Shown here: positions 1,188 through 1,376 of the stretch, piece by piece
How positions within the stretch are numbered: the stretch's first letter is position 1
How the letters are laid out: each line of letters begins with the position of its first letter
NCBI GenBank assembly: GCA_002269645.1
Contig: NIVC01000181.1
Span: forward strand, 461,693-525,692
Length of the DNA stretch: 64,000 nucleotides
Direction of reading: 5' to 3'
From: Macrostomum lignano
Taxonomy: Eukaryota
Notes under the pieces: model-generated
Database searches by the model: none
What the model was told of the DNA's origin: nothing
What the model saw: the letters and a program-made list of their open reading frames with translations, nothing else
Position numbers and translations under genes: made by a program

Positions 1188-1376
1188 ATGAAGTGGCAAC
1201 TCGCTCTCGGACTTTTGCTGTTCGCAGCCATGGCCGTCGCCATGCCCACCCAGGAGGAGAAGGCCCACGCCGAACGTGTGCTGGAGGAGACTCTGTCCAA
1301 CCTGGACGAGTCCAGCCTGTCGCAGGAGCAGAGCCCGAAGCTGAAGAAGAAGTTCATCCATATTCATTTCGGTTAG
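1188..1376 (+). CDS. Secreted prepropeptide 1, 62 aa: signal peptide, acidic propiece, KKK, FIHIHF-G (predicted amidated)
   Basis: ATG at 1188 in AATCATGA context. MKWQLALGLLLFAAMAVA is a hydrophobic signal ending in an AxA site, followed by a Glu-rich spacer, a basic cluster and a terminal Gly. The first 43 residues are 37/43 identical to the paralog at 4503. Confidence 0.85.
   Translation: MKWQLALGLLLFAAMAVAMPTQEEKAHAERVLEETLSNLDESSLSQEQSPKLKKKFIHIHFG

Follow-up and report, generated by a model that had tools for sequence, protein, structure and literature searches.

A lineage-restricted family of prepropeptide genes in Macrostomum lignano predicted to release short alternating β-strand peptides, among them FIHIHF-amide

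Introduction

Natural linear β-stranded antimicrobial peptides are uncommon (PMC8757834). Designed [XZ]n peptides, including [IR]4-NH2, (IRIK)2-NH2, (VRVK)2-NH2, [KL]n and [RW]n, bind membranes, form β-sheets and kill microbes beyond a length of 6-9 residues, with [IR]4-NH2 being highly active and RV/KV designs weak (PMC8757834). In designs of the IHIHIQI type, alternating histidines displayed on fibrils coordinate Zn2+, and activity is found only in the amyloid state (PMC8431744, PMC12995857). A gene at positions 1188-1376 of a 64,000-nucleotide stretch of the genome of the flatworm Macrostomum lignano (contig NIVC01000181.1; the whole stretch is called the window below) encodes a small precursor whose predicted C-terminal product, FIHIHF-amide, shares features with both kinds of design, and here we describe this gene and the family to which it belongs.

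Among host-defence peptides cut from prepro precursors, we take the frog dermaseptin-superfamily preproregions, the cathelicidins and the Hydra arminins to be the families for comparison. Temporin-SHf (FFFLSRIF-NH2) is considered to be the shortest linear antimicrobial peptide found in nature. The ATCUN motif, an amino-terminal site for Cu(II) and Ni(II) that consists of a free N-terminus with His at position 3 and a residue other than Pro at position 2, binds these metals in square-planar geometry; peptides that carry it include piscidin 1 and histatin 5, and piscidin 3 starts with FIHHIF (PMC11256756). Schistosome neuropeptides include GFVRIamide and an RLamide of the I/Lamide (NPP) family, and their precursors are described as highly conserved between species.

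Results and discussion

A prepropeptide gene with FIHIHF at its 3' end

The open reading frame (ORF) at 1188-1376 on the forward strand is a real prepropeptide gene with FIHIHF encoded at its 3' end. It is intronless and uninterrupted, extends over 62 codons from the ATG at 1188 to the TAG at 1374-1376, and encodes the product MKWQLALGLLLFAAMAVAMPTQEEKAHAERVLEETLSNLDESSLSQEQSPKLKKKFIHIHFG. The original prediction had read the C-terminus as KKKFIHIHFG followed by a stop, and this is correct, as positions 1341-1376 spell L-K-K-K-F-I-H-I-H-F-G-stop, with CTG at 1341-1343, the codons for KKK and FIHIHF (Table 1), GGT at 1371-1373 and the terminal TAG; the same ending is intact in every FIHIHF copy recovered. 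The predicted signal peptide, read by eye, has a basic n-region, a 14-residue hydrophobic core and small residues at positions -3 and -1, and the propiece that follows is acidic, as had been proposed, with a net charge of -5. From established secretory-peptide biochemistry we infer removal of the signal peptide, a convertase cut after KK(K) and amidation by peptidylglycine α-amidating monooxygenase (PAM). As a β-strand, FIHIHF places its even residues I, I and F on one face and F, H and H on the opposite face. It contains neither K nor R, and its calculated charge is about +2.5 at pH 5.5 and about +0.5 at pH 8.1.

The motif [KR][KR]-ΦΦ(BΦ)2-4-G-stop (Φ, hydrophobic; B, basic) has two matches in the six-frame translation of the window, both of them family genes, compared with a mean of 0.01 in 100 Markov-simulated windows. 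The bare string Φ-H-Φ-H-Φ has 91 matches against about 6 expected, but nearly all of them trace to non-coding satellite DNA at 56-62 kb, and the HxH enrichment of the window was therefore rejected as significant. The occurrence of FIHIHF is meaningful because of its context, namely the signal peptide, the KK pair and the terminal Gly-stop, and not because of HxH itself.

A lineage-restricted and tandemly amplified gene family

Family ORFs were extracted from the window and from 12 fetched loci, and about 35 related gene models were compared. These models derive from a genome-guided transcriptome annotation in which reads are not assignable among near-identical copies; because this annotation was built on RNA-seq, they imply that the family is transcribed. 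The M. lignano assembly is known to be redundant, so the copy numbers given here are upper estimates. The layout of signal peptide, acidic propiece, basic cleavage site and C-terminal Gly, which is the precursor logic of the original prediction, is kept in all of the approximately 35 gene models, with one subfamily (FHLHLP) ending in -GK-stop, the other canonical amidation signal. The FIHIHF type is represented by at least 7 genomic ORFs in the fetched loci, all intact, and by gene models on 5 contigs. The recovered copies retain the same end of the coding sequence (CDS), their only differences being H27Q and a few silent sites, and they occupy at least three contexts: two syntenic clusters, each with a tandem pair, and solitary positions beside an unrelated 811-aa gene.

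Most of the related genes encode Arg in place of His. These Arg types, each followed by Gly-stop, are FVRVHVRF, IFRVHVRF, FVRLRVRI, IFRVRVRI, IFRVRVHI and FVRVRVRL, together with IFRVRARIHI, WLRVRARVRI, FVRVRARIRL, FVRARVRVRL and FIRARVRVRL. More distant genes encode the His types GFHVHFH-G (11 distinct CDS) and FHLHLP-GK (4 distinct CDS), and some of these are found about 50 kb past the end of the window, on its own contig. The peptide genes are arranged in large tandem clusters whose order is syntenic on two contigs. When 1.84 billion representative proteins were searched with a profile, the same signal peptide and propiece were recovered joined to different C-terminal peptides, namely WRRRRRFRWRKAIRVAGKVAKAVL, FLRVRLPRVRMPRVRLPRVRLPRLRVRFRWSKK, WRIKSACKIFRRLLHLARKCYAKK-G and AVYKPNYYKD. 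Among the C-terminal peptides of this wider superfamily are an Arg-rich one of 24 aa, a Pro/Arg-rich repeat of 33 aa and a cationic peptide with two Cys, and some of them look helical.

A protein search matched only M. lignano 'hypothetical proteins', and the profile search yielded no relatives in other taxa, save one member (P0027) from an unplaced Logan contig. A Pfam scan of both window precursors gave no family above the cut-off. The Lock_Gag1-like match, which was below the cut-off for both window precursors and reached 27.1 against 27 bits only for the internally duplicated P0011 (see below), was rejected as spurious, as were Apo-CIII and other matches well below the cut-off. The exact 62-aa product, looked up in assemblies with the aim of finding transcript-like contigs, had no match, and literature searches with the peptide strings, with gene IDs and with Macrostomum combined with neuropeptide/amide or antimicrobial peptide returned nothing on this family. 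The peptide genes thus form a lineage-restricted, multi-copy, tandemly amplified family in M. lignano that was previously undescribed.

The FVRVRVRL gene model P0011 (NIVC01002033.1) has 21 propiece residues duplicated internally (MAVLEALSNVDESSMSEEAVDNA repeated), which implies that the propiece tolerates changes in length. P0030 and P0043, on other contigs, are divergent members with the same prepro region whose C-terminus, AVYKPNYYKD or AVYKPNYNKD, is a Tyr/Lys/Pro decapeptide that lacks both cationic character and alternation and recalls adhesive or eggshell motifs of the DOPA type.

Alternation with a basic face as the conserved trait

The KK pair stands before the variable peptide in all aligned members, the sole exception being the divergent P0025/P0032 type, which has E-K. 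The short mature peptides are 6, 8 or 10 residues long, and the steps in length correspond to 6-nt indels of one basic plus one hydrophobic unit, the mature-peptide coding DNA amounting to a short hexanucleotide repeat, (AGG GTY)n-like, in which the alternation is never broken. Substitutions in the mature region stay within class, with V, I, L, A, F or W at hydrophobic positions and R or H at basic positions. All 12 short mature types alternate, and their hydrophobic moment at 180° (μH(180°), 0.6-1.45) is far above that at 100°. As read from these alignments, the trait conserved in the short types is amphipathic β-strand alternation with a basic face, and not HxH. The proposed check of whether paralogs retain the HxH spacing has a divided outcome, since GFHVHFH-G and FHLHLP-GK do so, and keep it invariant while their propieces diverge, but the nearest relatives of the FIHIHF gene carry Arg (FVRVHVRF, FVRLRVRI, IFRVRVRI, WLRVRARVRI).

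In its prepro region, the FIHIHF gene shares 85% identity with the FVRVHVRF and FVRLRVRI genes but only 54-63% with the other His types. Because its nearest prepro relatives are Arg-type genes, HxH is a derived state, and the same identities imply that the His-rich state arose more than once or moved between genes by conversion. At the DNA level, TTC ATC CAT ATT CAT TTC GGT (FIHIHF) and TTC GTC CGT GTT CAT GTT AGG TTC GGT (FVRVHVRF) are separated by three nonsynonymous G/A transition differences (A in FIHIHF, G in FVRVHVRF) and one 6-nt indel, with zero silent differences.

Between types, the nonsynonymous distance (dN) rises from 0.027 in the signal peptide to 0.17 in the propiece and 0.46 in the mature region. 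Within types the pattern is reversed. Among GFHVHFH genes, 0 of 8 mature residues vary (there is one silent change) versus 8 of 36 propiece columns, and among FHLHLP genes the counts are 0 of 8 (two silent changes) versus 17 of 37, with nonsynonymous and synonymous proportions in the FHLHLP propiece being nearly equal (pN 0.149, pS 0.156). The probability of finding no variable mature column is 0.014 relative to the FHLHLP propiece alone (hypergeometric ratio, calculated by hand), and with the signal peptide included it becomes 0.056 for FHLHLP, 0.11 for GFHVHFH and about 0.04 for both combined; these selection statistics are rough, as paralogs are not independent. On this comparison of coding sequences, the GFHVHFH and FHLHLP peptides are demonstrably under purifying selection. 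Because the mature part is invariant within these two types while the propiece drifts, the C-terminal peptide appears to be the selected product and the propiece a spacer. Across the family, the net charges of propiece and mature peptide are inversely correlated (r = -0.87, or -0.90 with His counted as basic), so that a more highly charged mature peptide goes with a more acidic propiece.

Comparison with described systems

The resemblance of FIHIHF to the catalytic amyloid heptapeptides, namely Ac-IHIHIQI-NH2, the example given in the original prediction, and IHIHIYI, holds in part. The Φ-H-Φ-H-Φ pattern with His at i and i+2 is present in I-H-I-H-F (residues 57-61), and the two share the IHIH core, a C-terminal amide (predicted here) and His on one face of the β-sheet. 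However, FIHIHF is a natural sequence of six rather than seven residues, with an extra N-terminal Phe that gives the register ΦΦHΦHΦ in place of hydrophobic residues at 1, 3, 5 and 7, and its predicted N-terminus is a free amine rather than acetylated, with nothing that indicates acetylation. In addition, its nearest paralogs have Arg instead of His. Predicted cleavage would also create a metal feature beyond those first proposed: F-I-H, after KKK, and G-F-H in the GFHVHFH type both have His at position 3 and a residue other than Pro at position 2. FIHIHF and GFHVHFH would thus carry an ATCUN site for Cu or Ni if cut directly after KK(K), whereas KFIHIHF, with one Lys retained, would lose it. 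FIHIHF starts with the same three residues as piscidin 3, but piscidins are 22-residue helices, whereas the peptides here are 6-7 residues in total, with an N-terminus deduced from the precursor.

The designed [XZ]n peptides are closer to the family as a whole, with which they share strict alternation of basic and hydrophobic residues, a length of 6-10, a C-terminal amide (predicted here) and a β-strand moment that far exceeds the helical one, with IFRVRVRI-NH2 and FVRVRVRL-NH2 coming close to a natural spelling of [IR]4 or [VR]4. Unlike the designs, the window peptides are gene-encoded, would be cut from a prepro precursor and start with two hydrophobic, often aromatic, residues. A polar face with the permanent charge of Lys or Arg is found in WLRVRARVRI (+4.4) and most paralogs, but not in FIHIHF, whose length of six is the lower limit of the 6-9-residue activity threshold.

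With the host-defence precursors named above, the family shares a conserved signal peptide, a cationic C-terminal peptide whose charge is offset by an acidic propiece, a basic site, multigene clusters and varied structural classes on one scaffold, ending in a variable C-terminus. It differs from them in having no sequence homology, in using KK instead of KR or an elastase-type site, and in its far shorter mature peptides (6-10 aa). The Pfam scan gave no homology to a described antimicrobial family, and all relatives with a known source are unannotated M. lignano 'hypothetical proteins'. Temporin-SHf is similarly ultra-short (8 aa), Phe-rich, amidated and derived from an acidic-propiece precursor, but it is of frog origin, helical in membranes, not alternating and unrelated in sequence. 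Flatworm FMRFamide-like and I/Lamide peptides resemble the family in their precursors, which combine a signal peptide with dibasic sites and Gly amidation, and some paralogs here would end in -VRI, -VRL or -VRF amide. In contrast to these neuropeptides, the present family is multi-copy and hypervariable, with a single peptide per precursor at the extreme C-terminus and with some polycationic members of 24-33 aa. The cross-species R-F/I/L-amide signature is also lacking, as FIHIHF would end in -IHF-amide, only some paralogs in -VR[FIL]-amide, and the profile search returned no flatworm ortholog. What is new is the unusually short, alternating β-strand, Arg-or-His design, whereas a prepro-encoded secreted cationic peptide family is of a known kind.

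Proposed function and alternative explanations

By analogy with these systems, we tentatively regard the family as secreted, membrane-active β-strand peptides acting as antimicrobial or defence-type effectors, with a probability of roughly 0.45. This function is favoured because a conserved prepro region is combined with a variable cationic mature peptide, because the genes are tandemly amplified, and because longer polycationic members share the same scaffold. The 18-residue signal peptide would direct the 62-aa product into the secretory pathway, where the acidic propiece may neutralise and chaperone the basic or hydrophobic C-terminal peptide. A prohormone-convertase-type enzyme, as the conserved KK suggests, would then cut after KK(K), and PAM would convert the terminal Gly into an amide, giving FIHIHF-NH2 with a calculated [M+H]+ of 812.457. 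The corresponding calculated values are 940.552 for KFIHIHF-NH2, 879.437 for GFHVHFH-NH2 and 762.441 for FHLHLP-NH2, and, as 2+ ions, 529.822 for FVRVHVRF-NH2 and 662.434 for WLRVRARVRI-NH2. The released peptides would be amphipathic β-strands with one hydrophobic and one basic face, and Arg types such as WLRVRARVRI-NH2 would most likely bind anionic membranes or polymers and subsequently assemble there into β-sheets, as natural counterparts of the designed [IR]4-NH2 and (IRIK)2-NH2. FIHIHF-NH2 would be a derived His-for-Arg member that is positively charged at the acidic pH of a granule and has almost no charge in seawater. Because of this drop in charge, it is expected to be aggregation-prone on release, and it may be switchable by pH and by metals, with the ATCUN site at F-I-H taking Cu or Ni and the second His available for Zn bridging. 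The balance of propiece and mature charge likewise resembles the charge-neutralisation logic of cationic defence-peptide precursors, and the 24-33-residue cationic peptides of the wider superfamily point to defence or toxin-like effectors and not to catalysts of the designed-amyloid kind.

Several observations weigh against a defence function. The synonymous distance (dS) between types is also raised in the mature region (0.74 vs 0.14), giving a dN/dS ratio (ω) of 0.62, which is not above 1 and so does not demonstrate positive selection there; homogenisation of the 5' half by gene conversion may account for the elevated mature dS. The FIHIHF copies, at 98-100% identity, are too alike to test constraint on FIHIHF, and the redundancy of the assembly inflates the number of copies throughout. 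FIHIHF, with six residues and neither Arg nor Lys, is at or below the activity threshold of its designed analogues, and KK is a weaker convertase site than KR. The evidence for cleavage and amidation is at the level of sequence and not of peptides. The endings -VRFamide, -VRIamide and -VRLamide of the paralogs resemble flatworm neuropeptide C-termini, and neither the Pfam scan nor the profile search revealed homology to known antimicrobial families. Up to 18 family gene IDs had no match in the searched main texts and supplementary tables of M. lignano transcriptomic papers, in which data on tissue, cell type or induction were not found for them.

The endings of the paralogs are central to the foremost alternative, namely that the genes are neuropeptide or hormone precursors whose amidated -HVRF, -RVRI, -RVRL and -IHF peptides act on G-protein-coupled receptors or on DEG/ENaC channels gated by peptides, and represent a Macrostomum expansion within the flatworm RFamide or I/Lamide peptides. 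A signal peptide, a dibasic site and a Gly amidation signal are standard neuropeptide precursor grammar; paralogs ending in VRI-, VRL- or VRF-amide, one of which starts with FVRL, compare with the schistosome GFVRIamide and RLamide; a constrained mature part beside a drifting spacer, as in the GFHVHFH and FHLHLP types, is likewise usual in neuropeptide genes; and the window contains a DEG/ENaC channel gene. This channel gene, however, is 47 kb off with unrelated genes between, FIHIHF itself lacks an R-[FIL]amide ending, and dozens of tandem copies, mature peptides that differ radically between types (including those of 24-33 polycationic residues), and balanced charges of propiece and mature peptide are not expected of such precursors. 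The absence of orthologs outside M. lignano, apart from the unplaced Logan contig, also contrasts with the cross-species conservation of schistosome precursors, and we consider this explanation unlikely, although a hybrid version, in which a neuron-derived cationic peptide is also antibacterial, is possible. Somewhat more doubtful is the proposal, close to the original prediction, that the His types (FIHIHF-NH2, GFHVHFH-NH2 and FHLHLP-NH2) are natural metal-binding, self-assembling β-sheet peptides of a structural, adhesive or catalytic (amyloid-like) secretion, kept soluble by the acidic propiece in acidic granules and assembling on release into seawater of pH 8 or on binding Zn or Cu. The IHIH core identical to that of the Zn-dependent esterase amyloid IHIHIQI, the three independent His types, the conservation of the GFHVHFH and FHLHLP amino acids despite synonymous change, the high multiplication of the GFHVHFH type (11 distinct CDS) and of the FIHIHF type (at least 7 copies), the repeated origin or transfer of the His-rich state, the fall in charge from +2.5 to +0.5 between pH 5.5 and 8.1 and the potential ATCUN site at His3 are all consistent with it. 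The designed peptides are, however, N-acetylated 7-mers of a different register, the nearest paralogs are Arg peptides incapable of metal coordination, and such amyloids are slow (kcat/KM 62 M-1 s-1 for IHIHIQI-Zn), with no evident natural substrate. In an equally doubtful formulation, the amplified and conserved His types would be natural equivalents of the catalytic amyloid designs, kept protonated in granules next to an acidic propiece; once in seawater of pH 8 they would bind Cu or Zn through ATCUN and i/i+2 His and self-assemble, perhaps together with the Arg paralogs, into a functional metallo-peptide material with an oxidative, hydrolytic, adhesive or antimicrobial role. For FIHIHF, metal binding is plausible and catalysis speculative.

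Lineage restriction, tandem amplification and a conserved prepro region with a variable mature part are typical also of venom peptides and fast-evolving reproductive proteins, and the peptides could accordingly serve another ecological or reproductive role, as seminal-fluid or mating peptides or as gland toxins or deterrents against prey, predators or competitors, with membrane activity aimed at eukaryotic cells. M. lignano feeds on diatoms and is not known to be venomous, which speaks against toxins. Reproduction-related genes of M. lignano are reported as fast-evolving in PMC7336406, but 0 of the 18 family IDs searched appear among the reproductive or tail transcripts given there as validated in situ (file 16), a weak counterpoint since these IDs are a subset; overall, such a role seems improbable, and less likely than either alternative above. 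Finally, the FIHIHF type could be a recently duplicated, decaying derivative of an Arg-type gene, shortened and deprived of its charge, in which HxH has no function. The three nonsynonymous transition differences and the 6-nt length difference from the FVRVHVRF type are compatible with decay, the near-identity of the copies makes their conservation uninformative, and redundancy inflates their count. Against this, the ORF, the signal peptide, KKK, the register and Gly-stop are preserved in every copy, the copies lie in at least three distinct genomic contexts, transcript models exist, and independent His types are under purifying selection, which makes decay very unlikely.

If the peptides are made as predicted, the family would be a natural, gene-encoded series of minimal alternating β-strand peptides of a kind otherwise designed by chemists, both for antimicrobial use ([IR]4-NH2, (IRIK)2-NH2) and for metal-dependent amyloid catalysis (IHIHIQI). 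The members form an evolutionary structure-activity series (Arg versus His, lengths of 6, 8 and 10, varied hydrophobic residues), and they would be the first candidate host-defence peptide family described for M. lignano, a flatworm open to RNA interference and transgenesis. The His types pose the question of whether pH- or metal-switched mini-peptides serve as secreted effectors or materials in animals.

Upstream region and tandem paralog

The second family gene of the window lies 3.3 kb downstream of the FIHIHF gene and has the same build (Table 1); no further family genes were found in the 64 kb. A copy with an identical CDS is present on NIVC01000181.1 (L003 17270-17470). About 270 bp of upstream DNA are common to both window genes, and the segments 922-1331 and 4227-4646 are 81% identical. 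Within this region, 7 subfamily representatives, some of them with a prepro identity as low as about 55%, carry the promoter block CGGAAACACGTGCC.ATC…G.ATA.ATT in invariant form. The common block suggests co-expression of the subfamilies in one cell type and, since all family genes carry it, the FIHIHF peptide is expected to be co-secreted with the Arg types. It also provides a candidate handle on a cell-type-specific regulator or on the producing cell type. The Logan-derived Pro/Arg-rich member, FLRVRLPRVRMPRVRLPRVRLPRLRVRFRWSKK, carries a similar promoter, with a related block upstream of its gene (L009 ~395-425).

An N-terminally extended protein, starting at the in-frame upstream ATG (uATG) at 1092-1094 and corresponding to NCBI 'partial' or 111-aa models, was rejected, as the upstream frame is not conserved between paralogs. 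Indels that change the frame, with lengths of 2, 5 and at least 23 nt, distinguish their upstream regions, so that the apparent ORF extension is non-coding. The uATG sits in the promoter block, 5' of the conserved TATA-like box, and is probably not translated. About 1.1 kb 5' of window position 1, at L001 2776-2835, a 3' fragment of a WLRVRARVRI gene (…QKAVDNAKKWLRVRARVRIG) is found between two tandem FIHIHF copies and is a relic of a duplicated [FIHIHF-WLRV] unit.

Table 1. Positions of the peptide genes, their upstream elements and neighbouring genes in the window
Feature	Position	Strand	Remark
Promoter and 5' leader of FIHIHF gene	922-1187	+	Conserved between paralogs
Invariant promoter block	1069-1106; 4390-4420		Equivalents in loci L001, L002, L006, L008, L012
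E-box CACGTG	1078-1083	+	Inside invariant promoter block
CCAAT	1084-1088	+	Inside invariant promoter block
TATA-like CATAAAT	1097-1103	+	Inside invariant promoter block
Signal peptide, codons 1-18 (MKWQLALGLLLFAAMAVA)	1188-1241	+	Predicted cut after A-V-A
Acidic propiece, codons 19-52 (MPTQEEKAHAERVLEETLSNLDESSLSQEQSPKL)	1242-1343	+	34 residues, net charge -5
K53-K54-K55, predicted convertase site	1344-1352	+	KK directly 5' of variable peptide in aligned members
Predicted mature peptide FIHIHF	1353-1370	+	Alternating residues before Gly-stop
Gly62 (predicted amide donor) and TAG stop	1371-1376	+	Gly-stop or Gly-Lys-stop in all short alternating members
Promoter and 5' leader of tandem paralog	4227-4502	+	Alignment to upstream region of FIHIHF gene
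Paralog gene, 66 codons	4503-4703	+	Ends …DNAKK-WLRVRARVRI-G-stop
Paralog signal peptide	4503-4556	+
Paralog acidic propiece	4557-4661	+
Paralog KK	4662-4667	+
Paralog predicted mature peptide WLRVRARVRI	4668-4697	+
Paralog Gly	4698-4700	+
Paralog stop	4701-4703	+
PPP-family Ser/Thr phosphatase (Metallophos) exon	18857-19429	+	Ordinary housekeeping
Acyltransferase (PF01553) exons	24613-26429	-	Ordinary housekeeping
Non-LTR retrotransposon	30238-34984		ORF1 30238-31161 and ORF 31161-31733 without Pfam match
Retrotransposon ORF	32183-34984		RVT_1 and RNase_H domains, looks intact
DEG/ENaC ('ASC', PF00858) channel gene, two exons	51992-55179	-	Pfam

Other features of the window

The window is eukaryotic in character, with no dense ORFs and with satellites and a long interspersed nuclear element (LINE). 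Within assembly GCA_002269645.1, its sequence was matched to NIVC01000619.1, at about 37.9-101.9 kb. Functional linkage of the peptide genes to the phosphatase, the acyltransferase, the LINE or the DEG/ENaC gene was rejected, as this is a eukaryotic locus with unrelated gene classes. The DEG/ENaC superfamily includes FMRFamide-gated channels, and some peptides of the family would end in -RFamide; the presence of the channel gene in the same window as the peptide genes is probably a coincidence.

Positions 40822-45125 and 45211-49511 form a near-perfect 4.3-kb palindrome, whose inverted arms are 99.8% identical and separated by an 85-nt spacer, and which is either genuine or an artefact of long-read assembly (a hairpin or chimeric read). 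The FVHVHFG strings at ~44170 and ~46165, one in each arm, lie in a stop-rich non-coding frame and were rejected as chance look-alikes without a gene. A simple tandem repeat at 11428-11956 is open in three frames and reads (SIYL)n. In addition, 55822-58587 and 59501-62265 are a direct duplication of about 2.8 kb with 99.9% identity that holds a short-period satellite. This satellite is open in several frames on both strands, reading …GANLHVHVGD… or …PTHLLHVHVDWR…, and is the non-coding source of most HxH strings in the window.

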